From Selaginella moellendorffii (lineage: Eukaryota; Plantae; Lycopodiophyta), in contig NW_003314275.1 in NCBI RefSeq assembly GCF_000143415.4, forward strand, positions 2,674,173 to 2,738,172: a stretch of 64,000 nt of DNA, in the 5' to 3' direction. This document shows positions 7,847 through 55,431 of the stretch, piece by piece. Both the position numbers and the translations under genes were made by a program. Positions within the stretch are counted from its first letter, which is position 1. Each line of letters begins with the position of its first letter. Under the pieces are notes generated by a model. The model did not search any database, was not told where the DNA came from, and saw only the letters and a list, made by a program, of their open reading frames with translations.

Positions 7847-8433
7847 TGTAAGCTCCTGAGTTTGGACTTCCTGGGAGGTCACCCAACCTAGTACTATTCA
7901 CACCCAAGGACGTTTAACCCCAAATATCCCAAGACCCTTAACTGATTGGAAAAGAGGGTGCACTTTTGTTCATGGGCTCTTTCCCTCTATATTTAAACCC
8001 CTATGGATCGTCTTTCGAGTTGTTCCCTTTGGTTGCTTACAATCCACCACACTTCCTTGCAAGTTCACACCTTCGTGAACGGAAGCTAAGAGCCGCAGCT
8101 CTCCCGAGAGCCTCGCTCTCTTGACACCCTACCCCTCAGGTCGAGCCTAGCGGGAGCAAACTGGACCAGCTACATGTCAATCAACATATGGTGTGATTCC
8201 TTTAGCCAACCAACAAAGTCGGACCCGAGACCCCTTTGATACCAAATGTAAGCTCCTGAGTTTAGACTTCCCACCCAACCCAGTACTATTCACACCCAAG
8301 AACGCTTAACCCCAAATATCCCAAAACCCTTAACCGATTGAAAAAGGGGGTGCACTCTTGTTCATGGGCCCTTTCCCTCTATATTTGAACCCCTATGGAT
8401 TGTCTCTCGAGTTGTTCCCTTTGGTTGCTTACA
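7847..8433 (-). mobile_element. Cassandra-type TRIM with a 5S rRNA-derived segment in the LTRs
   Basis: LTRs 7847-8041 and 8247-8433 with a 205-bp interior. Minus-strand PBS tggtatcaaagg and PPT aaggaagtgtggtggat; TSD gctta/gcttg. Bases 7864-7918 match the 5S rRNA internal control region. Confidence 0.92.
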
Positions 8434-11400: not shown

Positions 11401-14400
11401 TCTTTCGTCAACAATGATTATGCATCTCTTTTTTGATGGGATGATTAGTGATCTTTCATGATAGTTAGTTGTTCTCTTTGATGGCTTATGGCTTTTTGCA
11501 ATACCACATGTTGTTTGTGGTTTGCTCTGGATTGGTCTCTTGGGTTTGAGACATCAGTAGGATGTTGCTGGCACTTGCTTAGACAAACTCTGGTTCCTTG
11601 ATATTATTGACCAGGATCTATTCAGATTGATTAGTGTGATGGTTAGCATGAACGAGTGTTTATTGGTTTTACTATATACATTTTGTTCTGTTGATCATTA
11701 CTTGAGTTAATTCTGATAGATTGGGATGTTATTACCTTCGAGTGATACATTCGCGAGCATCTTGCTTGCCAATCGATGATACTTTGTGTTCTTTGAATTA
11801 TCTTTTGTAAGTTGTTTGGCATTCTGTCGGCAATCTTTGATAGTTAAGTTTTATCATCAAGTTTTCTTAATGATAGTTTGGCTATTGAATTTTGTTAAAT
11901 GGTGAATCCTATGTTTCCAAAAACATGATGATCTTGGTGGTTCTTGTACTATACTACTAGTTTATCAGATGATAACTTACTTGGAATACTTTTGTGTTTT
12001 AATATAAGATTTAATCACTGATACTTATAACTCTAAGATATCATTGTCTATGACTTTGATATTATCCGATTATTGATCTTTGAGTTTGGGCAAGTATAGA
12101 CAGACTGACTTCGGCACTTCGTATACATGGTGAAATCTCTAGTCATAGGGTAACTACTGTTGACTAGTCACATAACCCGCCTCTCTGTCGATGTTCCTTA
12201 TTCCGTTAAAAGGGTGTGACCGTGTAAACAACTCTAACTGCCTGTTTATAGTAGTCTATCTAAACCTTACCGACGGGTTTGGTTTCTTTGCTCAGGAGGG
12301 TTGGGGCCTTTGGCTTCTCTCTCTATATCCCTGCGGGTAGGGGCATATCACACTTTTGTAAATTGGGTGACAACCAGAGCAGCAAGGGTGGCTGACTCCA
12401 TTAGTCATTTCCTTGTTGGCGATAGCCGAAAGGTGTCTGAGCTGGTAGCGCATCCGCGTTAGACAAAGAAGTTGCCTTCTAACTTATTTAAGTTGGTGCA
12501 TTTCTCACATAGTGTGAATACCGTAAACTTTTTATGGAGTTGTTTCCTTGGCAGTATTCTAGACTCGAGTATGCATCGACGAGGACGTCAATCTTCCCTT
12601 GAGGGGGAGAGTGTCACAAATGTGACTTTGGATATCGAAAGTTACCTGTCGGCTAGTCCTTACGGACACTCTTACCTTACTGCCACGATGGTAAGAGGTT
12701 GATATTGCTGATTCCCTTTATTAGCGCCTCTTGTTCAAGTGTTAGTAAACTAGACTTTGTATCTGTCCTTGGCCGGATGAGCATAAGAAAAGAATTCCTA
12801 AGTGTCTATTTAGCTAAGCATACTTGGCCTGGCTTGTTAGTTCTCTTTTGCTCTGTCTTGCACTGGCTTGGCAAAAACCCTCGCGTGTTGAGACTAGTCC
12901 CTCAATATTGCTAGATGATAGTTTACCGTGTCTACCAGACACCCTCGCTATCATGCCCTTTGTGTTAGTCTCATTTCGGTCTCAAATGCTACTTAAGCCA
13001 ACTGGAAAAGGGGCAATTGCTTAATGAGAGAGCCCTTAATGATGAGGGGAACTAGCACCTCTATTTCCATACTCAATATACCAATCCTTCCATTGTGTAG
13101 ATTAGCTAATCCATATGAGGCAACTAATTATCCACCCATACCGCAGTCCCACGGTGGATACCTTTGTCTGTGGATATTCCTCTTCTTTCGCTTATGGATA
13201 TTCCACCCATACCATAATCCCATGGTGGATACCTTCGTCTGTGGATATTCCTCTTATTTCGTCTGTGGATATTCCACACAAGAGGAAGGACGTATGCATG
13301 CATATGATTTCAAATTTAGGGGTAGGAATATACCTTTCTCAAAGGTATATTATATTTTTAAGTAGCCACTAATCAATGGGAATCGAACTCGTGCTATTTG
13401 TTTTAATACCACATGTAGCGCACCTTATCTCTCTCCCCTTAAGCCAACTGGAAAAGGGGCAATTGCTTGATGAAAGAGCCCTTAATAACGATTTTATCCC
13501 CATTTATCCCCCAAGGTTCCAAGGATCCACAGTGATAGTATATTCAAATCTCATCCTATGATCACATGCGCTACACTAAAACTCTTATCATTGTCCACCT
13601 GCAGAGTACAAAGTGGATGATTTGGTGTTAGTTTATTTTTCCCATTTTATGGTATGTGGTTTATCTAAGAGGCTCTTTATTCAGTGGAAAAGACTGTATC
13701 AGGTGTTGTGGCAAGTTGAACCACAAGTTCATGAAGTTCAACATGATATTCAATACGCCGATCCTCCAAAAATTGTGCACGTGCAGCAGTTGAAACGTGT
13801 CATACAAAGGGATCATGAACAACTAATACCACCTACAGATCCGTTAATGCCTCCAAATCCCGACCCATATACAAGAGAACCTTGATAATCTTCTATTATT
13901 CCAAGAGGAAGGGATGATGTGAGGTCTAAGTGTACAGCTAAGATGCTATATACTAATATTAGCGTAGTGAGATTTAGGTAGCCATAAAAATGGTTTTAAT
14001 TTAGACCACTCACTCTTGTATATAAGCTAGGGTTTATGGGTTAATTGGGATGCATATTTTCTGTATTCCCTTTTCATATTCCATGCACCCACAAACCTAT
14101 AAATCTATTCAAAATTTAAGAGTAGTTTTAAAAAAATATTTAAGTTTAAAGAAATAATATGTATAGCTATAAATAATTAAAAATATTAATATATATTAAA
14201 TCTTTTGTAAATTCTCAAACTTGGACCTTGAGTAGTTTAAGTTTATCAAACAATTGGATGTTTTATGGACTGAAAATAATTATTTTAAAAGTTCAATAAA
14301 TAATTTATTAAGTGATGCTAGCTAAGTCTGAAGCTCTAAACTTGTATTTCATATAAGCATTACCTTTAACCCACTACAAATGTATGAATTTATATTACTT

Positions 14401-22405: not shown

Positions 22406-24813
22406 TGTCGTGAATGTGACTTCGGGTATCGAAAGTTACCTGTCAACTAGTCCTTACGGACAATCTTACCTTACTACCACGATGGCAGGAGGTTGGCATT
22501 GCTGGACCCTTTATCAGCCCCTCTTGTTCAAGTGTTAGTAAACTAGACTTTGCATCTGTACTTGGCCGGATGAGCATAAGGACGGAATTCCTATGTGTCT
22601 ATTTAGCCAAGCATACTTGACCTGGCTTTTTAATTCTCTTTTGCTCTGTCTTGCACTGACTTGACAAGAACTCTTGCGTATTGAGATTGGTCCCTCAATA
22701 TCGCTACATGATAGCTTACTGTGTCTGCCAAACACCCTTGCTATTATGCTCTTTGTGTTAGTCTCATTTCGGTCCCAAATGCTATTTATGGAAAGTGTCC
22801 AAATTTGCTCATTTGGCATATCTATAGAATCTAGAGATCGGTCTGAACATAATGGTGTTCATTCCGTGTCCAAATTCGCAATCTAAGGACATTCCATATT
22901 TAGTAAGTTTCGAGCTTGTCCCAGAGACTAACTCCTGATACTAAGGGAGGCTTGGGGTGAAAGCCCAAAGCATGTGTTCCTCAAGAGGGGGGTTATGGGG
23001 GGTTCCAAATGTATAGTAGGGATAGTGGGTATGTCGGGCATGGCCGACCAACCTGAGGCATAGTCTAACTCCCGCTTGCATGCCTGTCCTTGTTTTGCGT
23101 CTGGCTTGGGTCTAAGCCCAAGTTTCATTCCATGCTAGCTGATGAAATACCCATATCCTTGCGTTAGGCCATCGGTATGCCAAAATAGCACTAGACTCTG
23201 TTTGGCTCTGTTTTGCATACTAGTCCTGGCATTGGGATGTTAGTTGCTCTAGGACTGTTCTAAGTCGCTCCAGGCTCCTATCCCTTCGCTCCTTGGGCTT
23301 GCCTGTCCTTGTTCTGCGTCTGGCTTGGGTCTAAGCCCAAGTTTCATTCCATGCTAGCTGGTGGAATACCCATATCCTTGCGTTAGGCCACCGGTATGCC
23401 AAAATAGCACTAGACTCTGTTTGGCTCTGTTTTGCATGCTAGTCCTGGCATTGGGATGCTGGTTGCTCTAGGACTGTTCTAAGTCGCTCCAGGCTCCTAT
23501 CCCTTCGTTCCTTAGGCTTTATACTCGGGAGTTGCTCCGTGGTTCGGTTCTATCACTCCTTGACTCCATGCTTGGGAGTTTGGCACCGTTCCTTCGTTCG
23601 GTGGCCCCAGGCCCTAAACCTCAGGTTCCTATGGACACATGGCATGGACACACGTGGCACAAAAAGGGTTTAGGTTCCGCTTCGTGGTGTTATCCTATAG
23701 TAAATCACCATAGGATAAAGGGTCAAACCACGTGCATGTAAGTTCCTAAATTTGGACTTCCAAGGACGCTTAACTTCAACTATCCCAAGACCCTTAACCG
23801 ATTGGAAAAGGGGATGCACTCTTGTTCATGGGCCCTTTCCCTCTATATTTGAACCCTAATAGATCGTCTTTCAAGTCGTTCCCTTTGGTTGCTTACAATC
23901 CACCACGCTTTCCTGCAAGTTCACGCCCTCATGAATGGAAGCTAAAAGCCGCAGCTCTCCCGAGAGCCCCGCTCTCTTGACACCCTACCCTTCGGGTGGT
24001 GTGATTCCCTTAGCCAACCAGTAGAGTTAGTCCCAAACCCAAGGATGCTTAACTTCAACTATACCAAGACCCTTAACCAATTGGAAAAGGGGATGCATTC
24101 TTGTTCATGGGCCCTTTCCTTCTATATTTGAACCCCAACAAATTGTCTTTCAAGTCGTTCCCTTTGGTTGCTTACAATCCACCACGCTTTCCTGCAAGTT
24201 CATGCCCTCATGAACAGAAGCTAAAAGCCGCAGCTCTCCCGAGAGCCCTGCTCTCTTGACACCCTACCCTTCGGGTGGTGTGATTCCCTTAGCCAACCAA
24301 CAGAGTTGGTCCCAAACCCAAGGACGCTTAACTTTAACTATCCCAAGACCCTTAACCGATTGGAAAAGGGGATGCACTCTTGTTCATGGGCCCTTTCCCT
24401 CTATATTTGAACCCCAACAGATCGTCTTTCAAGTCGTTCCCTTTGGTTGCTTACAATCCACCACGCTTTCCTGCAAGTTCACGCCCTCATGAACAGAAGC
24501 TAAAAGCCGCAGCTCTCCCGAGAGCCCCGCTCTCTTGACACCCTACCCTTCAGGTGGTGTGATTCCCTTAGCCAACCAACAGAGTTGGTCCCGAGACCCC
24601 TCTAATACCAAATGTAAGCTCCTGAATTTAGACTTCTCGGGAGGTCAGCCCAGTACTATTCAAACCCAAGGACGCTTAACTTCAACTATCCCAAGACCCT
24701 TAACCAATTGAAAAAGGGGGTGCACTTTTGTTCATGGGCCCTTTCCCTCTATATTTCAATCCCAACGGATCGTCTTTCGAGTCATTCCCTTTAGTTGCTT
24801 ACAGTATGCTACA
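22406..24813 (+). mobile_element. Solo LTR of the element B family, with an internal 219-bp tandem duplication and a Cassandra insertion
   Basis: Homologous to 5808-6947; ends ctaca at 24813; TSD actgg/actga; duplicated segment about 23082-23300 and 23301-23519. Confidence 0.9.
23737..24803 (-). mobile_element. Tandem-array Cassandra TRIM (four LTR segments, three internal domains)
   Basis: LTR ends at 23897, 24176, 24455 (279-bp period) and 24803. Single PBS (tggtattagag on minus) at about 24600-24610. 5S-like segment in LTR 24613-24803. Confidence 0.92.
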
Positions 24814-26164: not shown

Positions 26165-27559
26165 TTACACCAGAAGTAAGAGGATTACCAAAAAGCCTGT
26201 GAGCGCAAGGCGGACGAGGATTCGTATCTTAGCTACAACCACAAGCATTGCCACCAACGCCACCGTGAGAGAGTAAATCTGGCCCCTGTTTATGCGAGCC
26301 ACTTCCTTCCTACATAGTCTGCAAAAGGAAAGCAAGTAAAAAGGGCCATGAGAAAATGGCTTAGCTTGAGAGACCTCAGTTCCTTCATGGATTTAGAAAA
26401 CACGTCGTCCGCAAGACGATGCTGCAAAGAAAAACCAAATTAAGGAAAGGAAATCTAAGAAAAGGTCTGCTTACTTGCTTCTGCACAGTGTCGTTCAGAC
26501 TCTTAAGCTGCCTCATTATGTTTGTCAGCTCCTCTTGGTACTCATTGACAGCAGCAGTGTTCTGGGAGTTGGAAAACTCCACGTACTCCTCAAAAGTCTT
26601 CTGGTCACTTTCCAGTTGTAGTATCTGTTCGATGAGGAACTTGTTCACAGACGTAGTGGAACCACTAGTGGAATCCCCCGGGGAACTGCCAATCAAATCT
26701 TCAAGCATGCGCCCAAGCGCGACTCCAAAAACCTCGAAGGTGCTAAGCGTGCAGTAAAACTCCGTCCCATAGTGTGAGAGGATCCTCAGCTGGAGATATC
26801 TCGCCCACTCTGGCTTCGACAGAATAAACCTCTGAGGTTGCCCAACGTTCCTCGCCTCGAACTTTCCCAAGAGCCTCCATCCAGATGTAGGATAGCTCAG
26901 GCTTCCCAGCAGCTCCAGCTCCCTTGGATTGGACGAGTAGAGCTCGTAGTTGGCGATGACAAATGTTTCCACCAGAATTTCTTCAGCCAGCTCCACCATG
27001 ACGAACTTCTCCTTGGCGCTGCATGGGTTCCGAAAGTACTTATCGTTGCCCTTGACGAGAATGTTGCCAGCACCCTTGCCTTCCTTGTTTGCCCCTAAAA
27101 CTTTAGCACCGAGTGAGGCTGCGGCATAGTTGTGTTCGTTGCCCCCAACTTGGCGGTCGCGCTTGTGCCTGTTATCGTCGTCTTGATTCTCACTTGCTGA
27201 GACGAGGATATGCGAATGGAGAGGATTGAGTTCCGGACTAGCGAGAGGAACACTTCGTTCTTCCGCTAGCGCTGTGGCACGGTCGGGATCGAAGGGACTG
27301 ACTTCTTCACCGTTGCTAGAACTCTGGAAATTTTCGCTCAGAGAAACAAGATGGAAGAAAGAAAAGGTACCTCAGCAGTGCGATTGCACGAAATATCGAG
27401 GAACTGCTCTTCCAAATCGAGAATCTGGTGATGCGCCTCCAAAATCTCGGGGATTGGAGCTTCATCGACCTCCGGAAGCTCGGAATGGAGCTCCATCCCG
27501 ATCCCCAGTCCCGAGACGACCAAGAGAAGGAGCACCGCAAGACGTAGATTGCTCACCAT
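26165..27559 (-). CDS. Mid-SUN protein, copy 2 (signal/TM, SUN, coiled coil, two TM)
   Basis: Exons 27559-27371, 27323-26475, 26421-26375 and 26318-26165 join in frame with GT-AG introns. Motifs HNYAAASLGAKV, NYELYSSNPRE, SHYGTEFYCTLS. Confidence 0.9.
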
Positions 27560-27756
27560 GCCGGGTCAAGATGCGCTGATCGATCGACGGAAGAACCTGA
27601 TCGGCGTCTCTATAAACCCTAGCCCGCGCCAGAGGAAGAACACATCCCTGAAATACCTTAGAGGAGAGCATCGGTGCCTAGTCCATCGCCACCACACCGC
27701 TGGCAGGATTCGACCCTGGAAACCATTCCCCGCCAGATTTAAATTGCGAATATTCT

Positions 27757-28240
27757 TTAGCCGGTACTTTTCCCGTTCTGCGAGAGAATGGAGTGTGACG
27801 AGATTCCACTCCGGCATACCTCGTGCACTCCGTTCTGCGAGAAAGTCACCAGCTTTGCCGTGTAGGAGATGAGATCCCACCCAGGCATAGAACCGAAGAC
27901 GCCCTTTTCATCGTCAAAATGCCCCTTCTGGGCAAATGCCGTAAGAAGGACGTTCCAAGACACAGCATTTCTCTGCGGCATCAGATCAAAGAGGCCTTCG
28001 TGCCTTCGATGCTTCCATTCTATCAGATCAAGACCCGCAAGCCATCAAAGACCACTCTATGCTGCTGCATCGGACGGGTGGATCGCTCGCGCATCCTGCA
28101 GCTGGATCGCCCATAGCCAGGCCATCATAGATCAATAGAGGAGCGAGGGACCTCGGCTGGAAAACGCACCAGATGAATGACCAAGCCTGGCATCACGAGC
28201 TCCACATATCAGACCATTGCTAAGCAGCTCATCCAAAAGC
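27757..28240 (-). pseudogene. PPR (PLS-type) gene fragment
   Basis: MPQRNAVSWNVLLTAFAQKGH...FGSMPGWDLISY; frameshifted. Confidence 0.75.
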
Positions 28241-28244
28241 CCTA

Positions 28245-28267
28245 CTCTCTCTCTCTCTCTCTCTCTC
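28245..28267. repeat. (CT)n microsatellite
   Basis: Directly visible. Confidence 0.95.
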
Positions 28268-28284
28268 GTGCACTATCCGATACG

Positions 28285-28745
28285 GTGTTAGGGTTTTTAC
28301 TTTCATGATGCGGTGGTTCTGATCTTCGTAGTCTTGCTCTTCTGGTTCGTTTCAGCACAGGGGATGGGGATTGAGCTCCATTACGGGGATCCGGAGACCA
28401 ATCTAGCTGAAGCTCTCCGATGAGCTCCACGCTGGGGGATGAAATGCAGGTCGGAGATTTCCGCAGATGCAGAGCTGACTTTGCCGGATCTTGCGCCGAG
28501 GTAGGCTTCTATGCTCATGTTTTCTTGTTGTGTAGTCATTGAGCTACGGCCTGTGGATCTTGGCACAGCGGCGAGTGAAATCTCGCACAACGTCGTGGAG
28601 GACAAGTATGCCACAGCCTCGCTGGGCGCCAAAGTTATAGGAGCGAACAAGAAAGCCGAGGTGGTATCTACATTCTCGTCAAGGACAAGGATAAGCACTT
28701 CCGCAGCCGAAGACAAGTTGGTGGTTGTGGAGTGTTCTTTGGCTG
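28285..28745 (+). pseudogene. Truncated copy of the 5' part of mid-SUN copy 3
   Basis: Near-identical to 29660-30170 (IELHYGDPET, SCAE|gtaggc, YATASLGAKVIGANK) with deletions and frameshifts; runs into PPR sequence. Confidence 0.85.
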
Positions 28746-28779
28746 CTGCAATGCCATAGAGCTCTCCGAGGCCGCACAT

Positions 28780-29500
28780 AGCAAATCCACCATAGAGCAA
28801 TAGCTTCATGGTTTTGGAGAGATCAAGGGCGTCCATACCGTAGCCGGGCATCTGGGTGTACAGGGTGTTCCACGTGACGGGATCTGGAGCGTGCATTTCC
28901 CGGAAGGTGGACTCGGATGTGCCCGTTCTGGGCATATGCCTGGAGCCTGACGCACCACATCGCTCCTGTTTGAAGAGATTCTTGGCAAATGCCCCGACCA
29001 TGCAGCTCCATGCTAGGATGGTCTTCTCCGGCATTGAGTTAGAGATTCTTCAAGATGCCCTGATTGGGCATATTCTTGGAGCAGGAAAGACTACAATAGC
29101 GTCCCATGCGGGCATCTGATAAGTTTCCAGCGTTTATACAGGCCTCTATTAGTGTGGTTCACGACACTTTTTATGAAATACTAAACGAGCTTTATCAAGA
29201 ATGGGCATATGCTCTAATCAAAGCAGTCGCTCAAAATCTGGCATAGAATCAACTAAGCTGTTATCATTCGGTTTCTTCTCTGGGCTTCTTGGATATGCCC
29301 AGACTGGGAATATGCCTGGGTCAGAGAATTCGGCCACACCCGCTCTGGGCAATTGCTGTGAGAAGAACATTCCACGACACAACATTCCAGATCAAAGGGC
29401 CGCTTCGTGTCCTCGACATTCTGTATGGGCGATCCAGGCCAGCCTCCGATTTCTTGACTCGCTTCACGCAATTCTCGCAGGGGAACTGGAGCTTGAGATG
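28780..29500 (-). pseudogene. PPR gene fragments
   Basis: MPEKTILAWSCMVGAFAK, QAYAQNGHI, NVVSWNVLLTAIAQSG and QAYSQSGHIQEA occur in different frames. Confidence 0.75.
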
Positions 29501-29681
29501 CGCGGGACGATGTACAACGAGAAGAAAACAGAGAGCCAAGTTTGAATGCGTCGATTGCGACTAAGAAGAAATCGAGGCGTTTGATACTGGAATATTAGTG
29601 GTTTTTAAAATTTAGGGTTCGTGTCTTTTTCCCTCCATTTTGATGAAGCCCTAGCCCCGGCATTGTAGGGTTTCTTGTTCT

Positions 29682-31178
29682 ATGGCGGGCGATCGTCGTC
29701 TTCCGGTGGTTCTGATCTTCGAAATCTTGCTCTTCTGGTTCGTGTCGGGAGCCGGGATCGGGATTGAGCTCCATTACGGGGATCCGGAGACCCATGAAGC
29801 GCAGATTTTCGAAGCGCAGCTCTCCGATGAGCTCCAGGCTGGGGAGGAGCGCGATGAAATGCAGGTCGGAGATTTCCGCGGATTCAGAGCTGATTTTGCC
29901 GGATCTTGCGCCGAGGTAGGCTTCTGCGCTCATGTTTTCTTATTCTTAAGTCATTGAGTTGCGAAACTTTCCAGCCTGGGGATCTTGGCACAGCGGCGAG
30001 TGAAACCTCGGACATCCTCGTGGAGGAAAACTATGCCGCAGCCTCGCTGGGCGCCAAAGTCATAGGAGCGAACAAGGAAGCCGAGGGTGGTGGCTACGTT
30101 CTCAACAAGGACAAGGATAAGCACTTCCGCAGCCCATGCAGTGCCGAAGAAAAGTTCGTGGTTGTGGAGCTCTCCGAGGAGACTCTGGTGGTCACCATCG
30201 CCATCGCCAACTACGAGCTCCTCTCGTCCAATCCAAGGGAACTGGAGCTCCTGGGAAGTTTGGAGTACCCAACCGAGGAGTGGAAACTCTTGGGGAGGTT
30301 CGAGGCGAAGGATGTGAGGATCCCGCAGAGGTTTACGCTGTCAGTACCGGAGTGGGCGAGGTATCTCAAGCTGAGATACTTGTCACACTATGGGACGGAG
30401 TTTTACTGCACGCTTAGCACCTTCGAGGTGTTTGGAGATGGCGTTGAGCGCATGATCGAAGGCTGGATGGGCAAGAGACCCATTCTCAACATCAGCTCGT
30501 CCAGTGAAGAGAATCAGTCCCAGGCACCATTCCAGAAGGTCTTCCCCAGAGTCCCTCAAGGTGAGAAAGGATTCTCGCAGGTTGTTTTGGTTGGAAAGGT
30601 CAGAGAGCTGGCGATGAAGCGGAAGATACTGTTGGATTACATTGACTACGTGAGGATGGTGCTCTTAGAGAACTCTCATCGAGAGATGCCGAAAGTGGTC
30701 TCGCGACTCGAGAGTGTGAAGATCGAGGTAAAACTTTTTATTTCTCTTAGTCATTTGCTTCTTTTTCCGTCTTTCTAGGTTCAGGCTGCAAGAGTGTTAG
30801 TGGACAACATCACGGTGCTTCAATTTCCGATCAAGTACAGCCATTCATTTTCTTTTACTCTATTAAAAAAAAATTATTTGCAGGCGTTGCGTGAAACAAA
30901 TCAGAAACATTAGCGATCGGCGTTACTTTGTGGTCACCATGGCGTTCTTAGTAACAGTTTACCTCTTCCTCTCTAGCATGGCTATCCGTCAAGCAATAAA
31001 GCTCATGTAAGTATTGTCAAGCTTGGATACCCTGGACCTTTCTCTAACAGGATTCATTCCTGTTTAGGTGGCGGAGAATTTTCGGAAGCACTCGCTATGA
31101 ACACTTGCTACGGGTAAGTATGAGGCAGAAGAATCTTTACTGAGACAAACTTTTCTACTCGTTCTCCAGATCCCCTGA
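29682..31178 (+). CDS. Mid-SUN protein, copy 3
   Basis: Exons 29682-29915, 29975-30727, 30779-30834 and 30884-31007. Either stop at 31010 or continuation through 31068-31113 and 31170-31178, all in phase. Canonical SUN motifs, helical region and TM. Confidence 0.88.
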
Positions 31179-32240: not shown

Positions 32241-33468
32241 ATGGCGCGCCTTCCGGCGCTGCCGCGCGTGCTCTTCATAATCTTGCTGCTGTCGGTCTGC
32301 GACCGGGCTCCATTCTTCGATCACGCAGATTTGCGATGGTAAGCGAGCTCGGCACGAGGAAAGCTCTCCGGACGTAGAGTACCAGATTCTCGAGTCCGAT
32401 GAGCTCTATTTCGGGGATCTGGAGCGCGATGAAGCCGAGATTTCGGTGGAATTGGATGGCGTCGAGATCTTATCGGCTCGAACCGCTCTATCCGCTGCCG
32501 AGGTAGGCTTTCCCATGGTATTTTTTTTCTTATGGTTTCATTTGAGCTGGTTTTGAACTTTCCAGAGCCATGAGGAGCCTATGGAGAATACTACTGCCTG
32601 CGAACGACTGAAAAAGGTGACAACTGTTAGCTTGAAGGATTACAAAAGAATGGTGTCGTGGGCAAGCGAAAGTGACAAGTGGAACACCACGATCAAGCAC
32701 AGGCTCGAGCCCGGGGGTGAGGAGTTCAACTTTGCCGCAGCCTCGCACGGTGCTCAAATAGTGACCTCAAGCAGCGATGGGGGTAATCTTCTCAAGGATA
32801 AGTACTTTCGCAGCCCATGCAAGGCCAAGGAGAAGTCTTTTGTCTTGCAGCTTGCAGAAGAAGTCTTGGTGGATACCGTCGTCATCGAAAATCACGAGCT
32901 CTACTCGTCCAATCCAAGGGAACTAGAGGTTCTGGGAACCCTCAGGTATCCTACAGAAAGCTGGAGGCTCTTGGGAAATGTCGAAGCACAGAATATTTGT
33001 CGACCTCAAAGGTTTGTGCTGCCGAAGCCGGAGTGGGCGAGGTATCTGAAGCTGAGGATACTGTCTCACTATGGGAACGAGTATTACTGCACGTTGAATC
33101 ATCTGCAAATTTTCGGTTCAGGCCTTGAAGGATTGATTGAAGAAGCTCAACCTTACTGTGAGCAGCAGCAGCAGGTAAGAACGTTTTCGTGTCGACTTTG
33201 TGGTTGCTCACAGTCTTTCCATTTCCAGGATGCCACACAAATCCACAAATTGCAGGAAGAGTTAAGGTTAGTCTGTTTTCCATAGCTCATCTATTTGTCT
33301 TTTTTGTCTTCTTAAATTCTTCCCTTTTCCAGGCTACTCAAGAGCCAGATGGCTGACGACGTGTTGTATGTTGCTATTGCTGTCCTGGTTGTAGTGTCTG
33401 CCGTTCTCGTGTATCCGTGGATGGGTACTATCGTATGTTTGGTGGTGATCCACATAGCTACCTCTTGA
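32241..33468 (+). CDS. Mid-SUN protein, copy 4 (5' end apparently frameshifted; possible pseudogene)
   Basis: SUN exon about 32565-33174 (FNFAAASHGAQI, NHELYSSNPRE, SHYGNEYYCTL), then exons about 33229-33266 and 33333-33468 with TM segments. The signal-peptide frame from 32241 hits TAA near 32340 while homology continues in another frame. Confidence 0.75.
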
Positions 33469-33529
33469 TTCAAGGCGATAATCCAAACGCTGGCGGTTTA
33501 TACTGGCTTTTCTCTTTGCCAGGTTTATA

Positions 33530-33656
33530 ATGGGAAAGCCTGGTCGAGCGGATAAGATCTCGACTCCATCCAACTCCGCGGAAATCTCGGCTTCATCGCG
33601 CTCCAGATCCCCGAAATAAAGCTCCTCGGACTCGAGAATCTGGTGCAGATTCTCGA
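33530..33656 (-). repeat. Inverted copy of the 5' region of SUN copy 4 (about 32380-32517)
   Basis: Reverse complement encodes QILESEELYFGDLERDEAEISAELDGVEILSAR. Confidence 0.9.
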
Positions 33657-33674
33657 GAGCTAAGAAAAAGAAAA

Positions 33675-34586
33675 CGCCCCTAGTACAAAGATCACCCGAC
33701 CGTGCAGGTCCAGTCTTTTCTGGCATAGAGTCGAAGATGCTTTTGGATTCTTCAAGATGACCGCATTGGGCATATGCTTGGAGGAGCAAAGACTGTACAA
33801 TAGCATCATACACGGGGATTTGGTCGTAAAGTATTAAGTTTTCAGGGTTTAAAAAGCTTCTATGACTGTAGTCCATGACACCATGTTCTTATAAGGCATT
33901 TCGTGAAATAGCAAACGAGCTTGTTCAAGGTACCCGCATTGGGCAAATGCTTCAACTAAAGCAACTACGTCAAACTCTGGCATAGAATTTTGCAAGCATC
34001 AATATTTCCAGTAGATGAATATACTTGAAGCATCGTGGTCCAAGAATCAGTCTGGCATCTCATAAAAAAATCGACAAGTCTGTGAGTAGGCTGCCAGCAT
34101 GGCATTCCACGTCATCGGCATCGACCAACTCAGCATGACGTATGCCCGCATATGGCCGTGAATCTCACGTGAACACACTCACCTCGGGCATCTTGCCGTG
34201 GCAGCACTGAGATTCCCAGAGTGGACGAACATTGCCAGGATCGCGTTACATGAAACCATGCAAGAGGACATGTCTTATTTGCTCGGATCTTGAGGACACA
34301 CACGATTGTGTTCTTCTTCTTGCGATCAAGCAGCATGAAAAGAACCAAAATAAGTATTTTCTTTGAGTGCTCAGGATTCTTTGCTTCTTTTCTTCTTTGT
34401 GTGATCGAGCAAGCTGCGCGAGATCATTCAATGACTGTAGCATTACGCTAGAGAATGATGCTACCACTACAAAGAGAATGGAATGCCCCTAGTACAAAGA
34501 TCCCTTGACCATGCAGGTCCAGTCTTTTCCAGCATAGAGTTGAAGATGCTTCTGGGTTCTTCAAGATGCCACCATTGGGCATATGT
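33675..34586 (-). pseudogene. PPR fragments, including a direct repeat of about 100 bp (33676-33777 and 34485-34585)
   Basis: LQAYAQCGHLEESKSIFDSMPEKT and a second near-copy. Confidence 0.7.
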
Positions 34587-34830
34587 CTGAATGAACGAGC
34601 CTGTGAGAGGAAGATTCAGACCAGTCTCTCCAATACGGACTCACCTAGAGTTTATCGGGATATCCTTTCAGAGGCGACGTCTGATGACATATCATGGTTG
34701 TTGCTTCACCTCAAGCGGCCTCTTGTCAACGGTGTGTGGATTTCGCATCCTTGAAGATAAAGCACCTCTTCAGGGAAACACTTGCCCGCTCAAAGCTGGA
34801 AGACTTGGTGATATTTCTACAGTCCACTGG
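34587..34830 (+). pseudogene. Inverted fragment of the Crinkler-like gene (copy of about 35645-35898)
   Basis: LNERACERKIQTSLSNTDSPRVYRDILSEATSDDISWLLLHLKRPLV is near-identical to the ORF 35581-36873 translation. Confidence 0.9.
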
Positions 34831-34840
34831 TGAGAATTTC

Positions 34841-35592
34841 GAACCACTTTGAGCTCATGGTAACTTCTGAGTTTAGAATTAGTCCTTAGGTTCTATAATA
34901 TATATACACACTCCAAAAGTTCACAGGACAGAATTTCTCCACTTGGATCATAAGAAAACATTTTTACCAATGCTTAAGTCTATACCAAAATATTATCCTC
35001 TTTCTTTATCACTCTTTGGACTATTAGCGCATAGTTATGGATTTGGTGCATATGGGCATTTTTTTCCACAATAGCTTGATGATCCAAACTTAACAATTGG
35101 TTCATTATCAAAAAATTTACTACATTTACAACAATTAAAGCATGGAGAAAAAGGAATAATTATAAAAGGGCAAAAGTTGCATAATGATTTATTAGTCATT
35201 AACTTCAAGACAAAATAGTCCAAATACTTTGAATTTAGCTTCAAATTTAAAAGTGCAAGCACTCTTTCACAAGTCACAACTATTAATGCACCAAATCCTT
35301 TATTACAACTTGATAATTGTAGATTGAAAAAAAAATCAATAGTTATTTACATATTTATCCCTACTTGTCTCATATTGTCAAGGAATTTTCAAAACAATAG
35401 CTGAACACATGGGTTATGGTTTATGGTTTAAACGTCAATGGTTTATGAGGGTTTATAAAACCTACTATACACCATTTTATATATGTACATAAGTTATTTC
35501 AAATAATATTTAAATATAAATAAGGAAACCAGATTATTTTAATTCTAAACTCGCAAGTTACCTGTTGTGAGCTCATGAGCTCAAAGTGGTTC
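34841..35592 (+). mobile_element. TIR-bounded AT-rich DNA transposon derivative with a decayed transposase (Sola-like, from recall)
   Basis: Inverted ends gaaccactttgagctcatg...gtaactt..gagtttagaatta at 34841-34881 and 35540-35592. Plus frame LLAHSYGFGAYGH...DPNLTIGSL...LLQLDNC with stops. No TSD seen. Confidence 0.5.
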
Positions 35593-36873
35593 AGGCTTCT
35601 GTCTGTGCTCAAAGATGTATTTCCGTAGAGCGCCCAACTCGGGATCAGTGGACCGTAGAAATATCACCATGTCTTCCAGCTTTGTGCGGGCAAGTGTTTC
35701 CGTGAAGAGGTGCTCTATCTTCAAGGATGCGAAATCCAGCAAATATCTGGCACCGTCGACAAGAGGCCGCTTGAAATGAAGCAACAACCATGATATGTCA
35801 TCAGACGTCGCCTCTGAAAGGATAGCCCGGTAAACTTTAGGTAAGTCCGTATTGGAGAGACTGGTCTGAATCTTCCTTTCACAGGCTCCGTCATTCAGAT
35901 CGCCAACCTCTGCGTCACGAAGTAGACGAGGAATCCCACCGTACCAGTCGTAGTACAAGTCAGCTGCTTTGATGCGTGCATCCAACCGATCTGCCTCATC
36001 CAGAAGAGCCACCCGTGGAGACGACTGTTTCGAATACATCTTCCACCGGCGCTCACTCGGCTCGCTCGTCTTCAGCAGTCTATCAGCTTCTTCCCGCATT
36101 TCCTTGCTCTCAAGCTTCCACAGGCCTAGCAACGCCTCAAACTCGTCCTTATCCCAAGGGTGGACGAAGAACTTGCTTTTGACCCCTATTGGCTTCGCGC
36201 TCTTGATGTTTCTACGACCCGGGGATGGCGCTACCAATATCCTTTTGCCCAGAGGATCTCCACTCTCAATTTTCTGGTCGATGAGGTGAACCACACATCG
36301 CTGCAATCGACTCAAGGGGTACTCCGTCTTCTCATGGATGGATACCTGGCCTTCGGACGTGAATTCCCAGATAAAGTCCGCGGACTGGTAGACGACGACG
36401 AAGCTGGTGTTCTCAATGGTCATCTCAATTCCGAACCGGATGAGGAAGTACCAGAGGAATGCCGACTTTCCAACGCCAGGATTCCCGTTGAGGCGTCCTA
36501 ACCAATCCATAGACACTGCAGCTTCTATGGCCGAGTAGAGATTATCGAAATCCTTGCGCACGTACAGCCTTGTAATGCCTCGAGGTCCTCTCAGGGTTCC
36601 ATATTCCGCAGGCACACTCAAATCTATGAACTTGCCAGCGGCGTATACTTCTGGCTGTTGGTTCAGCACCCCTCCCCACCACGCGCTAAGCGCCGCCCCG
36701 GTTTCGCTCCTAAACTTCCCATCAGTTCGCATACCCATTCGAGCCCTAATTGGATCTAGGTTAGATGTTCTCCTTTTATTTATACGTTTCGCCTTTTTAT
36801 GGTGTAAAATATTCTGACCTAGATCCATTGGTGGAAGATGCGTTTCCACGGCTGGCTCTTCTGTTGGATGCAC
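35581..36873 (-). CDS. Crinkler/RHS-type (CR) effector P-loop NTPase, truncated at both ends
   Basis: LYVRKDF...GNPGVGKSAFLWYFLIR (Walker A), VHLID, LVAPSP, PWDKDE, YGGIPR, FAS, G.LR.YIFE is the typical CR-NTPase motif order. The C-terminus is cut by the TIR element and the N-terminus derives from an inverted copy. Confidence 0.75.
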   Translation of the reverse strand: MHPTEEPAVETHLPPMDLGQNILHHKKAKRINKRRTSNLDPIRARMGMRTDGKFRSETGAALSAWWGGVLNQQPEVYAAGKFIDLSVPAEYGTLRGPRGITRLYVRKDFDNLYSAIEAAVSMDWLGRLNGNPGVGKSAFLWYFLIRFGIEMTIENTSFVVVYQSADFIWEFTSEGQVSIHEKTEYPLSRLQRCVVHLIDQKIESGDPLGKRILVAPSPGRRNIKSAKPIGVKSKFFVHPWDKDEFEALLGLWKLESKEMREEADRLLKTSEPSERRWKMYSKQSSPRVALLDEADRLDARIKAADLYYDWYGGIPRLLRDAEVGDLNDGACERKIQTSLSNTDLPKVYRAILSEATSDDISWLLLHFKRPLVDGARYLLDFASLKIEHLFTETLARTKLEDMVIFLRSTDPELGALRKYIFEHRQKPEPL

Positions 36874-37272
36874 GTATCAAAGCAGCTGGCTTGTACTGCG
36901 ACTGGTACGGTGGGATTCCTCGTCTACTTCGTGAAGCAGAGGTTGGCGATCTGAATGACCGAGCCTGTGAGAGGAATGTTCTGCAATACGGAAGTCTATC
37001 GGGCTATCCTTTCCGCGGCGACGTCTGACGACATATCGTGGTTGCTGCTTCACTTCAAGCGGCCTCTTGTCAAGGGTGCCAGATACTTGCTGGATTTTGC
37101 ATCCTCCAAGATTAAGTATCTCTTCACAGAAACGCTCGTCAGAACAAAACAGGAAGACTTGAGGACACTTGTACAGTCCACTGATCCCGAGCTTGGTGCT
37201 CTACGGGGATATGTCATTGAGCAGGAAGTTGTCCGGCTAGTGCTAGACAGCAATTTGGCTGCCGTCACCTTG
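36830..37272 (+). pseudogene. Second inverted, diverged fragment of the Crinkler-like gene
   Basis: DARIKAAGLYCDWYGGIPRLLR...DPELGALRGYVIEQEVVRLVL; reverse complement of about 35605-36048 with deletions. Confidence 0.88.
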
Positions 37273-37324
37273 GTGAGTGTACTGGTTTTATGTTTTCCTC
37301 CCTTTCATCACAAGTGTTTTGCAG

Positions 37325-38015
37325 ACTGATAACAAGCACTGTAGTCAGTGCCAAGCGCGCGTCATGGAAGAAGGAGCAAACCGTGGGTTGATTGTTTGTA
37401 GACAATGCCGAAAAATCAGGAGTGTGCTCGTTGTCCACTACCTGTTCCTTCCTTGTGGAACTTTGAATCTTTCGAAGGAGAGACAATCCATGAAGGCATA
37501 AGCACTGGCGGTCTTAGGCTAAGGTATTACAACGGTGATTTGAAAACTGCGCTCCCGGCTGCAGGTAAGGTGTGAGATTTTCTGCTTACAATATTCGCAT
37601 TCCTTCCCATTTGCTGCAGGTCGCAATGCTAAAGACTTTGTGTGGAGGCCAATAAATAAAAGCAACGCTGCTTTCGATTTTGCGATCCCCCCTCGAAGAG
37701 TTGCCTGTAGAAAACAATACGTACCGCTGCCGGGGATCCATGAGGTCCTTGTTGTACTCGTTGTTCCATGCGTCCAGAGCAGCAACACCTTCCTCCACGG
37801 CCTCCCGTGGCACCGGGTGCTCGCTGGCAACTGTGGCTTGGCCAAGAACCCTCAATCACTCATTGATTCATTTTAGGGAGTATATCTTGGCGTTCTACTT
37901 AGCTCGAGGCAACTTCGAATGTTTCGGGTACCAGAGCTACCGGGACAAGCATCGGCATGTTTGCAACAAAGCCGTGAAACGTTGCAAATTGCTCGTTTTA
38001 AACGTCACACTTACT
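37325..38015 (-). pseudogene. Decayed CR restriction-endonuclease-like (REase) domain
   Basis: Minus-strand LWYPKHSKLP...LGQATVASEHPV...RYVLF and a second IYWPP...FQITV resemble the CR-REase Y.P...QxTV..H motif; internal stops. Confidence 0.5.
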
Positions 38016-38031
38016 TTTGAGTGTGTTATAG

Positions 38032-38333
38032 GAATTATCCAAGTCAAGATTTTGATCGAAACCTACGAGTTGCTTCAGTTAGCACATCCAGTTGCGGGCT
38101 CCGTGGATAAATTGATCGACCTTGAGTACGACGAGCAGTATGACCTCCATAAAATGACGGTTCGGGAACTCAAGGATTTGGCGAAGTCTTGGGGTCTTAA
38201 AGGCTATTCCTCCCTCAAGAAGGATGCATTGGTCGAGGCATTAAATGCTTGGGAGGAGCCACAAGTGCTTGAAAGCCGAGAGTACGAGAGCAAGTCGTAC
38301 CAAGAAATGTATGGAGATAGAGTTGTCGTTTGA
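38032..38333 (+). CDS. Exon encoding a Rho_N/HeH-like nucleic-acid-binding module
   Basis: LHKMTVRELKDLAKSWGLKGYSSLKKDALVEAL; upstream exons unresolved. Confidence 0.65.
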
Positions 38334-38888
38334 TGAAACCTTATATTTTTCTTCATCTCTCTCTTTGATCATCTCTGCCGTGCACGATCCACCAAACTAT
38401 AGAAGGTTTAGAAAATGAATCTTAAGAATGTTTGGCTTATCCTTTCAGCCATTGTCTCTGCATTATGCCCAGACTGGGAATATGCCTGGATCACGTAATG
38501 CGATCCTGTTCGTCCACTCTGCTGCCGCCAAAGAGTTCTTCGATAAGATGCCCGAGGTGAGCATCTCGTCTTGGAATTCTGTCTGGACTTGGAACGCTGG
38601 AGAAATCTGAGCGCATCGTCGCTATGTTCGTTCTCGACGCAGGCACTGATCATGATGTTCCACGAGGTGTTAAAGACATCTACACGGCCACACTTCCCAT
38701 GCATTTGAACTTGGCATCGCGATCGCGGGTTCTAACGCCGCTGCTCTCTTTTCCTCTAACGAGATCTCTCGCGACACAGCACTCCCGCAGAGCTGGGAGT
38801 GGCGTTCCACGAAATCTTCCAGTGACGAACAAGCGATCAAGCGTTGGTTCATACACGATGGGATTTTTACAAAGGATTTTTCTCTCTT

Positions 38889-52777: not shown

Positions 52778-55431
52778 CTATGACCGTAGCGGATTTCGGC
52801 TCTGTCTTCGAATATGTGATTTCCAGGCTGCCTGAATCCGTCTAGCTGCGTTGCTTCTGAAGTAGTGGGACTCGCTTCTGCACAAGCAGCTATGTAAAAG
52901 GGAATGCTGCGTTAAGATACTTACTTGAGAGCACTCAGGACCCTGGGATTGCGGATATAGCTTATGTAGTTTGCTACAACATACCGCAAATCCTTCTCCT
53001 CTAGGCTGAATGCTTCCACGCTACTTGAGCAACGAACAGTCCTCGTAGAGAAAGCCAAACCCCTTGTTGGAGCTGAACTATCCCTTCTGCTGTGCTCGCT
53101 ATTTGATGTTTCTCCTGTAACAGACAAACATGAGTTCAAAAAGTCAATGACATTGTAAAATACTTACTGGTGTTTAACGCTTCGTTGAGGCACAGATGTA
53201 GTAGCTCCTCCCCACAAAAGTCGCCCGACACAAGCGTATGTGTATTACCATTCTTCCATACGCTGTCTAGAGTACCACGTACTACAAAGATCATGCGATG
53301 TATTGGAGCATCTGCTAAAAAAACTTCGCTGCCTTCAATGTACAACATCTCGTGAAGTCTTTGACAAATTGCATCGAGAACTTTGTCATCCATCACAGTA
53401 AACAGCCGAACCTGGTAAACATGAATTAATTCAGCAACAACACCAAAATGCTGAACACAAACCTTCGTCAAGAGCTCGAAGCACAAAAAGCGACGTATTT
53501 CTTTTTGCATATCTTCGGGCAAACGATCCAAGAGTTCCTCCTCATTCACACCTCTGGTCGATGCCCATTTCAATCTCACCGCCTGTCTCACGCGCCTGTG
53601 AGTACGCGTTAGGAAGGAAAAATAAGGACAGCAATACGACATACTTTCTTAAAACTACAGGTAATTCCCGTCGCCTCATCCATCTCTCAACATCATGTCG
53701 TCGTAGCTGCATCTCAAGGTGCCTGACAAAGATATCTGTTATGTAATTTTCGACAAAAACTGACATGCATACCTGCGTCCAAGGGACTGGAGAAAATTTT
53801 GCATGTTTCCAATAAGAAGTGCAAACAAAAGTAGTCCCAGACCAATAACACCGAAAGTAAAAAACACTTCACCAACAAAAAGGCTAGGCTGCAAGTTCCC
53901 ACCGAGCGTACTAATTTGCTAAAAGATACAATGTGAGGAAACAAGAAAAATAGCAGTCATTCTTACCAAGAATCCCCAAAATAGCGAGTATACGTATTTG
54001 TGAATTGCACTGTCGTCCATGGCGACAGGAACTGCGATCGAATAGATGCCATAAGCGAAAGATGCATTCACCAGACATTTACTCGATGCATTTGAGGAAT
54101 TAGTCCAGACCAGCCGGGCCCCTTGCTGCAGTGCCTGAATGTTGTGCCCATTTCCACAGTCAAGAAATTCTTTTCTGCAGACTGGCCTTTCAGCTCGACA
54201 AGTGTTTATCAGGCACTGATTTACACGCTGCAAATTATAGGCAACATCAGTACTATGAGACTATAACCCGTGTTTCTCAGTTACCTGTAGACCGAACAAG
54301 TACCAGCATGATCCCACCACATGACCCGCAAGCAGGTAGATGAACAGATTGATGGTGAAGTTGGCCCAAGCAGTTTCAAAGATGTAGCCGCCACTCTGAG
54401 AGCGACCAAACAGCAACGGCAAAAACCTGACCATCCTNNNNNNNNNNNNNNNNNNNNNNNNNNNNNNNNNNNNNNNNNNNNNNNNNNNNNNNNNNNNNNN
54501 NNNNNNNNNNNNNNNNNNNNNNNNNNNNNNNNNNNNNNNNNNNNNNNNNNNNNNNNNNNNNNNNNNNNNNNNNNNNNNNNNNNNNNNNNNNNNNNNNNNN
54601 NNNNNNNNNNNNNNNNNNNNNNNNTAAACCAACTTTGCAAATAATGCAAGGCAATAGTTTTGGGATCGTCAATCAAAACACCAGTTCCAGATGTTTGAGA
54701 AGCAAGCGCAAAGTACGCCAATCTGAACTGCCATCCATTAAACAGCGTGTTCTATCAATCGAGAAAATTAAAGGAAAAAAGCTAAGAACAAGATACCTGA
54801 AGAAGCATGTGTATAAAGTAAATTCCATCAAAAATGCTCCTCACAATAGTCACTCCAATGGCTAACTCCTGGTTGAAGACAATGCAAAAGTATCCCTAGA
54901 GAATGAACAAGATAAGCATGAGTATAAAGCTTTTGCTTCTTCGCATAGATATTACCTGCTTGGCGGAAAATATAAAGAAGAACAAAGGATCCACAAAGAC
55001 GGCGATGAGACAGCATACTCCAAACACTTGATTCCATCTCTGGATGACTTTGGTGTGGGGATTATAAATCGCTGGCCTCCACTTGACAATCCCGAGCGCT
55101 ACCGATTTAGCCTCGCTGAAAAGGTTGCGACTCTTTTTCATCTGGAATTCTTTCACAGCTAAGTCTCAATCAAATCAAGCCTAAAGAATTCTTCTTGCTC
55201 TACCTGGCTGCCGGCCGAATAATCGATATACGAAGGGCAGGTCGTGCAAAATGGATCATCGCAGCGCCCCAGCAATCCAGACTTGAGTAGATGCTCGTGC
55301 CTGCCGCCTGGAACGGCCAATTCCCTCCCGGCGAGCTCCTCCCCATCGTCCTCCACGTCGATTCCAAAATCCTGCGAGAAATGCAGCTCCATCGACGAGC
55401 CGCCAGCGCCATCGGCCCGGTTCCGAGGCAT
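52778..55431 (-). CDS. Cyclic nucleotide-gated ion channel (CNGC19/20-like group)
   Basis: Multi-exon across an N gap; SGLLGRCDDPFCTTCP, GYIFETAWANF, LAGHVVGSCWYLFGLQRVNQCL, GDFCGEELL, IQ motif AARRIQAAWK. Confidence 0.92.
54438..54624. other. Assembly gap (N run)
   Basis: Run of n characters. Confidence 1.

Follow-up and report, generated by a model that had tools for sequence, protein, structure and literature searches.

An intact NTPase-only gene amid decaying inverted fragments: a Crinkler/RHS-like gene copy split by inverted duplications in Selaginella moellendorffii

We analyzed a 64-kb window of the Selaginella moellendorffii genome (scaffold GL377579.1; "the window" always means this whole stretch) and found in it one copy of a Crinkler/retrotransposon hot spot (RHS)-like ATPase-nuclease gene that is split by inverted duplications. 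What remains is an intact ATPase-only gene on the minus strand, amid two decaying inverted 3' fragments that we call the left and the right arm. The locus of the annotated gene SELMODRAFT_411388 (260 aa) corresponds to window positions 26955-48333 at 100%. We interpret the arrangement as a rearrangement scar in a structurally unstable, palindrome-rich cluster that is polymorphic between haplotypes, from which one by-product, a gene for the nucleoside triphosphatase (NTPase) part alone, appears to have been retained. The probability that we assign to this reading is about 0.7.

A repeat search of the window recovered four inverted pairs: 34586-34734 / 35751-35899 (149 nt, 93%), 34737-34829 / 35646-35738 (93 nt, 95%), 36860-36981 / 35868-35989 (122 nt, 93%) and 36992-37223 / 35606-35837 (232 nt, 82%). 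They reproduce the arrangement that an earlier note, made from the sequence alone, had described at this site: a minus-strand NTPase gene with a plus-strand copy of its 3' region on either side. The arm lengths given there, about 250 and 400 bp, also agree with our pairwise alignments (244 and 394 nt). Over its 244 nt the left arm is 93.9% identical to the reverse complement of 35646-35899, interrupted by a single 10-nt frameshifting deletion. The right arm, aligned from near 36829 to about 37224, is 86.8% identical over 394 nt to the reverse complement of the minus-strand NTPase 3' region (codons 231-378); against the intact paralogs described below, its identity over these codons rises to 95.9%. 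These similarities are far above chance. The features of the locus are collected in Table 1.

Table 1. Features of the split locus, in window positions
Feature	Position	Strand	Description
Left arm	34586-34829	+	Decayed inverted copy of NTPase codons 280-365, old B-type lineage
AT-rich spacer of the left palindrome	34830-35604		"TIR element" of the earlier note; inverted ends prolong the arms
B gene, 385-codon coding sequence plus stop	35581-36738	-	Stand-alone Crinkler/RHS-type P-loop NTPase with helical C-terminal region
Walker A, GNPGVGKS	36463-36486	-	Residues 85-92 of the 385-aa protein
Retained 5' flank	36739-36828	-	About 90 bp up to the breakpoint; aligns upstream of the intact-gene start in L003
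13-nt inverted micro-duplicate	36750-36762 / 36818-36829		At the split junction
TATA-like box	36777-36784	-	Inside the retained 5' flank, between the right arm and the ATG (39 nt before the latter)
Right arm	36829-37272	+	A-type copy of NTPase codons ~231-393; first part of the dead plus-strand gene, which is truncated at its 5' end
Remainder of the split gene (A')	37273-38333	+	PHD-finger remnant, nuclease-like core and Rho_N/SAP-like tail; part of SELMODRAFT_411388

The minus-strand gene, hereafter B, is free of stop codons and frameshifts in the window. The open reading frame (ORF) at 35581-36873(-) runs for 430 codons from a GTG, uninterrupted as the earlier note stated, but its initial 45 codons cover the 5' flank and extend into the right arm; the true coding sequence has 385 codons, equal to the annotated protein P0009, and begins with the ATG at 36738, which is orthologous to the start of the intact paralogs. 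Right after this ATG the window gene has a 16-codon in-frame deletion relative to those paralogs. The B protein shares 87-90% identity with the NTPase portion of those paralogs (651/693 aa), and ends soon after a conserved LRGxxFE motif with a lineage-specific tail of 7 residues. Residues G90 and K91 of Walker A are almost invariant in an alignment of 29 family sequences, and Walker B is a hydrophobic strand ending in D (HLID), C-terminal to Walker A.

No match to the ORF or to the arm ORFs was found in a sequence search of PDB, and a profile search against PDB sequences returned generic P-loop matches only (e.g., KaiC and PSTK). An AlphaFold2 model built from the 29-sequence alignment reached a mean confidence (pLDDT) of 84. 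Foldseek placed this model close to the STAND ATPases of NLR, Apaf-1 and Avs proteins (E ~1e-4, with low template-modelling (TM) scores), and VIA-align to mS29/DAP3, Avs5, TnsC, Cdc6/Orc and IstB (Z 8-9.7). These matches of a predicted structure indicate that the B protein is probably an AAA+/STAND-like P-loop NTPase followed by a helical region. An exhaustive HMMER search identified 35 relatives at E<=0.001. Those with names are mainly Selaginella gene models, many of them fragmentary; outside Selaginella, the relatives comprise hornwort transcripts, proteins of the chytrid Rhizophlyctis and of Capsaspora, and unnamed metagenome/Logan proteins. Identity within the wider family is 38-43% at the protein level.

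The ancestral architecture is that of the 651/693-aa paralogs SELMODRAFT_409319, LOC9650130 and LOC9650134, in which the NTPase (to about residue 393) is followed by a PHD finger (Pfam, 3e-5), a nuclease-like block and a Rho_N/SAP tail (2.6e-8). The block that follows the NTPase in these full-length proteins carries a conserved D...QxT...H motif; the canonical (D/E)xK is absent from it, and it had no nuclease match in PDB or Pfam. The description of the window ORF as a nuclease-less NTPase stands: it is a P-loop NTPase, and the nuclease-like module belongs to the C-terminal part of the full-length paralogs.

We found four copies in total: the one in the window and three in tandem on scaffold GL377575.1, about 23 kb apart, referred to here as L002, L003 and L004. 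Two of the four have an intact plus-strand gene (A), of 693 aa in L003 and 692 aa in L004, and in these the truncated NTPase copy stands head-to-head with the full-length gene. The inverted B copy upstream is partial and degraded in L003, and in L004 it is open up to an assembly gap. In L002, the A gene is split as in the window, and the B copy has the window's junction (98% identical). The same genes flank the cluster on both scaffolds, with Sad1/UNC on one side and Nodulin-like, Dus, L22e and OST-HTH on the other, and the right flank of the window is 97.9% identical to that of L004 over 10 kb. Because of this, GL377575.1 is most simply explained as the other haplotype, which would carry three copies against one; according to the genome paper, the S. 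moellendorffii assembly reportedly contains both haplotypes. Looking at the other haplotype and counting intact paralogs were both checks that the earlier note had proposed.

A side observation concerns the intact genes themselves. Those of L003 and L004 are identical over codons 252-393 and markedly different in the first ~55 codons, where the L004 gene has 10 private nonsynonymous changes. This mosaic suggests gene conversion among members of the cluster.

The plus-strand half of the window copy is 5'-truncated. Deletions of 13 and 11 nt shift the frame of the right arm. In the remainder A', located by tblastn with the 693-aa paralog (Rho_N match 4e-8), the PHD finger has a frameshift and its cysteine ligands are replaced. 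A 157-bp inversion (37695-37851) runs through the nuclease-like core in the window only; once flipped, the segment is 99% identical to all three other copies. Within it the core reads on the minus strand, and no inverted microhomology was seen at its ends. The annotated 260-aa model SELMODRAFT_411388 splices past these lesions. Judged by them, the plus-strand half is dead.

The history of the minus-strand gene appears to be different. Two old lineages, 85-88% identical to each other, can be told apart in the distal third of the NTPase (codon ~290 onwards): an A-type, found in the intact genes and in the right arms of the split copies (95-100% alike), and a B-type, found at the 3' ends of the minus-strand copies (93-95% alike). 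Identity across the proximal two thirds is 97-99% among all copies, regardless of strand. The ratio of nonsynonymous to synonymous rates (omega, NG86 method) is 0.22-0.42 in pairwise comparisons among B copies and 0.22-0.30 in the B-type arms, and 1.4-2.3 for the plus-strand arm copies of the window and L002 against the intact gene. Fixed differences between B-type and A-type arms are 15 synonymous to 15 nonsynonymous, where 76% nonsynonymous would be expected (p 0.002). Changes specific to the B-copy lineage number 23 synonymous and 16 nonsynonymous (p 1.5e-6), and those of the window B copy alone 6 and 4 (p 0.013). The stop codon and the 7-residue tail are common to three B copies. The arms show the opposite pattern: the left arm differs from the gene in 3 synonymous and 12 nonsynonymous codons plus a frameshift, and the copy-specific changes of the right arm are all nonsynonymous (0 to 5). 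In the multiple alignment the left arm is misaligned, so that its identity there (86.7%) and its grouping with the L003 B copy in the arm tree need caution. As far as substitution patterns can tell, the truncated, nuclease-less NTPase lineage is under purifying selection, and both arms decay neutrally. The frame that the earlier note saw as staying open does so, on this deficit of nonsynonymous changes, by constraint and not by accident.

Comparison of the four loci suggests how the split may have arisen. The left arm, an older fragment that covers codons 280-365, makes up a palindrome with the 3' end of the gene, and the AT-rich spacer lies at its centre. The arm has a counterpart in L003 (8541-8650) and none in L002 or L004. 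The L003 fragment is part of a near-perfect palindrome (8541-9015) that has an (AT)n / (ATAC)n microsatellite at its centre and adjoins a 2.7-kb gap. In L004, positions 2466-5300 hold three tandem direct units, each made of an unknown segment, an AT-rich spacer and a 120-160-nt fragment of the NTPase 3' region. After these units there is an insertion of about 3 kb, a repeat also present in the window at 1410-5798 and 13576-14094.

In the order of events that we reconstruct, which is an inference, an old inverted fragment of about 300 bp would have lain upstream of the gene. It would then have been extended by copying from the gene, giving the head-to-head pair seen in L003 and L004. A later deletion or rearrangement would have left a minus-strand copy that keeps the N-terminus and a plus-strand copy that begins inside the NTPase, as in the window and L002. 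The 13-nt inverted micro-duplicate at the junction looks like the footprint of a template switch. We also considered whether recombination between the arms had simply inverted the intact layout. It would not suffice by itself: the plus-strand copy begins far into the gene and the stretch in between has been lost, which calls for at least one deletion as well. Inverted duplications at inversion or fold-back breakpoints, and AT-rich palindromes, are known from genome rearrangement.

Several observations weigh against a rearrangement scar with a retained gene. Functional status is read from the substitution patterns, and the window copy contributes 10 changes to them. The B copy of L002 has one stop codon and two frameshifts, so that the truncated form is dispensable at least there. 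Unsampled paralogs may have donated pre-selected variants by gene conversion. The event order draws on comparison loci of which two of the three have gaps beside or inside palindromes. Finally, a Pfam search of the window protein matched no family at E<=1, and neither did the arm ORFs. Some of these points would also fit a young pseudogene, in which the locus as a whole would be junk and the recency of the split alone would explain the open 385-codon frame, and so do the clearly dead plus-strand half, the 10 private substitutions of the window copy and the heavily degraded B copy of L003. We consider this unlikely. The junction is shared with L002 at a synonymous divergence (dS) of ~0.12-0.13, and omega over that time was 0.22-0.31. 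The B-type distal third is far older still (dS ~0.27-0.30 from the A-type), yet it retains the even ratio of fixed differences and the conserved stop, while neutral copies in the same loci gained frameshifts over less divergence. An assembly artefact is hardly credible. Palindromes are hard to assemble, and gaps do occur at the palindrome centre in L004 (9881-9980, 100 N) and beside the palindrome in L003 (5831-8540, 2.7 kb). However, the only N run of the window is at 54438-54624, and the sequence is gap-free within 17 kb of the feature. The right junction is 98% identical on another scaffold, in a copy that is otherwise 90-97% identical, and the left palindrome is found again in L003. The arms are 6-13% different from their counterparts, hence not collapsed reads of one sequence. 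Misassembly is thus very unlikely, because the split layout recurs on the second scaffold.

Two further readings give the inverted sequences an active part. The earlier note took the segment between the left arm and the gene for a terminal inverted repeat (TIR) element; as a TIR transposon or miniature inverted-repeat transposable element, it could have produced the inverted gene fragments on both sides by aberrant transposition. The segment does have terminal inverted repeats of about 41-53 nt, at 34841-34881 / 35540-35592 (19/19 and 20/22 bases matching, with a 12-nt indel between), it is AT-rich with a variable interior (an (AT)n microsatellite in L003), and L004 has its three tandem units of segment plus gene fragment. 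The part to the right of 34944 aligns colinearly with L002 and L004 (80-83%). Against a transposon, no direct target-site duplication is present at its ends, because the flanks beyond the inverted ends are themselves inverted copies, and the symmetry merely continues the palindrome. No copy apart from the NTPase 3' fragment occurs in the window or in the related loci L002-L006 (64 kb plus about 100 kb), and its one ORF belongs to no family and has no similarity to transposases. We therefore find a transposon distinctly improbable, and read 34830-35604 as a probable palindrome spacer.

The second of these readings is a hairpin-RNA locus, in which read-through over the 3' third of the gene and one arm would give double-stranded RNA, and from it small interfering RNAs (siRNAs) that silence the intact cluster paralogs. 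It is accepted that hairpin and proto-miRNA loci of plants can arise when a target gene is duplicated in inverted orientation. In the minimum-free-energy fold of 34586-35899(-), 235 of the 244 left-arm bases pair with the 3' region of the gene. Perfect complementarity extends over as much as 48 nt with the left arm and 36 nt with the right, so a hairpin could form if an arm and the 3' region of the gene were co-transcribed. Small RNAs from the right arm would match the intact genes, given its 95.9% identity to them. But the genes diverge from the junction, with the arm copies in the same sense in both, so that there is no complementarity between their normal mRNAs. The TATA-like box separates the right arm from the ATG, and on the other side of the gene an AT-rich stretch of about 750 nt, likely the 3'-end region, separates the left arm from the stop codon; therefore the main mRNA probably contains neither arm, and fold-back would be limited to read-through transcripts. 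In addition, both arms are under neutral decay, and L002 and L004 lack the left one. Any small RNAs could reach the cluster paralogs (87-96% identical) only, the wider family at 38-43% being out of reach. We regard the hairpin as quite unlikely: nothing in these patterns suggests that the arms are kept complementary or that the locus is a silencing device.

Within the reading of a retained by-product, the NTPase-only protein would be made from a promoter in the 90-bp retained flank. Most likely, we infer, it acts with the full-length NTPase-nuclease paralogs, modulates them, or stands alone; an action through RNA is less likely. A role as partner or modulator is suggested because AAA+/STAND-like NTPases work as oligomers. 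A stronger version, close to a proposal of the earlier note, would make the truncated gene a retained "restraint" partner, either as a nuclease-less subunit that co-assembles with the full-length proteins, or through palindromic arms feeding siRNAs against their genes, or both. This is a long shot; if it were true, the cluster would be a plant analogue of toxin-antitoxin systems or of sensor/helper NLR pairs, derived from a Crinkler-type conflict module.

Assignment of the family to the Crinkler/RHS (CR) group, also made in the earlier note, is probable. It is supported by the nearest look-alikes outside Selaginella, which are of Crinkler/RHS type from oomycetes, fungi and trypanosomes, and it falls below the curated Pfam thresholds and lacks a header domain. 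Atlas feature scores were 0.97-0.98 to oomycete, basidiomycete and RHS clusters, the RHS clusters spanning 0.91-0.97. Five of the 29 relatives matched PF07999 (RHSP), the best at E 3.8e-5, and two of these matches scored 13.7 and 19.3 bits, under the 25-bit cut-off; nSTAND3 was matched by 10 of the 29. Word-index searches with the ORF, the 651-aa paralog and the 29-sequence profile returned Selaginella proteins and unnamed metagenome/Logan proteins, and no named Crinkler or RHS protein. Atlas models show structural similarity between the C-terminal module of the full-length paralog and proteins of euglenozoans, of basidiomycetes and, with a Crinkler header, of chytrids (TM 0.53-0.62 overall, 0.58-0.62 for the chytrid proteins). 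The 693-aa paralogs matched neither of the header domains PF20147 and PF20445, and about 45 low-complexity residues precede their NTPase.

Several features of the neighbourhood were also recorded. PPR-repeat pseudogene fragments flank the CR locus on the same strand (33334-33876(-) and 38408-38704(-)), and a 113-nt direct repeat (85%) of one of them, 33673-33785 / 34482-34594, stops precisely where the left arm begins; an old PPR gene may thus enclose the CR unit. The neighbouring Sad1/UNC genes (26687-30412 and 32381-32481 / 33544-33644) have inverted duplications too, namely segments 72-83% identical and a 101-nt pair at 93%. The Sad1/UNC gene adjoining the locus is inverted with respect to its L003 counterpart (94.9%). 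On scaffold GL377567.1, a fragment of the NTPase family (L005, 8753-9601; about 61% protein and 76-85% DNA identity) has codons 73-123 in reversed orientation immediately next to codons 126-369, and so adds a third small inversion, independent of the others, to those of the family. Lastly, a repeated element has copies 87-91% identical at window 7847-8433 and 23760-24803 and, upstream of the gene copy there, at 333-931 of L004.

Crinkler/RHS-type NTPase-nuclease modules are best known as pathogen effectors. The locus illustrates in detail how genes of this kind evolve in a plant, with a tandem cluster of one versus three copies, palindromes and small inversions, and with a nuclease-less NTPase derivative that selection seemingly maintains while its mirror-image fragments degrade. 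Should the truncated protein modulate its full-length neighbours, it would give a handle on the role of these modules in plants. The main yield is a documented rearrangement scar, together with the correction of the readings as a TIR element and as a silencing hairpin.

According to PMC5289972 and PMC12957317, which summarise Zhang et al. 2016, CR proteins with NTPase, helix-turn-helix and restriction endonuclease domains are found in land plants. The full-length Selaginella paralogs share with the modules described there a P-loop NTPase, a helical region and a nuclease-like domain. Relatives occur in chytrids, Capsaspora, a hornwort transcriptome and microbial-eukaryote metagenomes, and the nearest neighbours by language model and structure are oomycete, chytrid Crinkler-header, basidiomycete and trypanosome RHS clusters. 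The Selaginella proteins differ in having no Crinkler/Ubl header or signal peptide, in adding an inserted PHD finger and the Rho_N/SAP tail, and in their D...QxT...H motif instead of the canonical (D/E)xK; the window gene has no nuclease domain at all. The trypanosome RHS proteins (PF07999) have a P-loop domain of the same apparent type, and both families are multigene with numerous broken copies. Unlike them, the window protein misses PF07999 at E<=1, has no RHS_N domain and belongs to a plant host.

With plant hairpin and proto-miRNA loci the region shares adjacent inverted copies of part of a coding gene, and near-identical paralogs as potential targets; here, however, the copies lie in divergent genes or 750 nt past the stop, and decay neutrally. 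The likeness to fold-back and inversion breakpoints extends to the head-to-head partial duplicates, the 13-nt micro-duplicate at the junction, the AT-rich or (AT)n palindrome centre, the clean 157-bp micro-inversion nearby and the copy number that differs between haplotypes. In contrast to the usual breakpoints, one product of the rearrangement here, a truncated NTPase gene, has seemingly been kept by selection.

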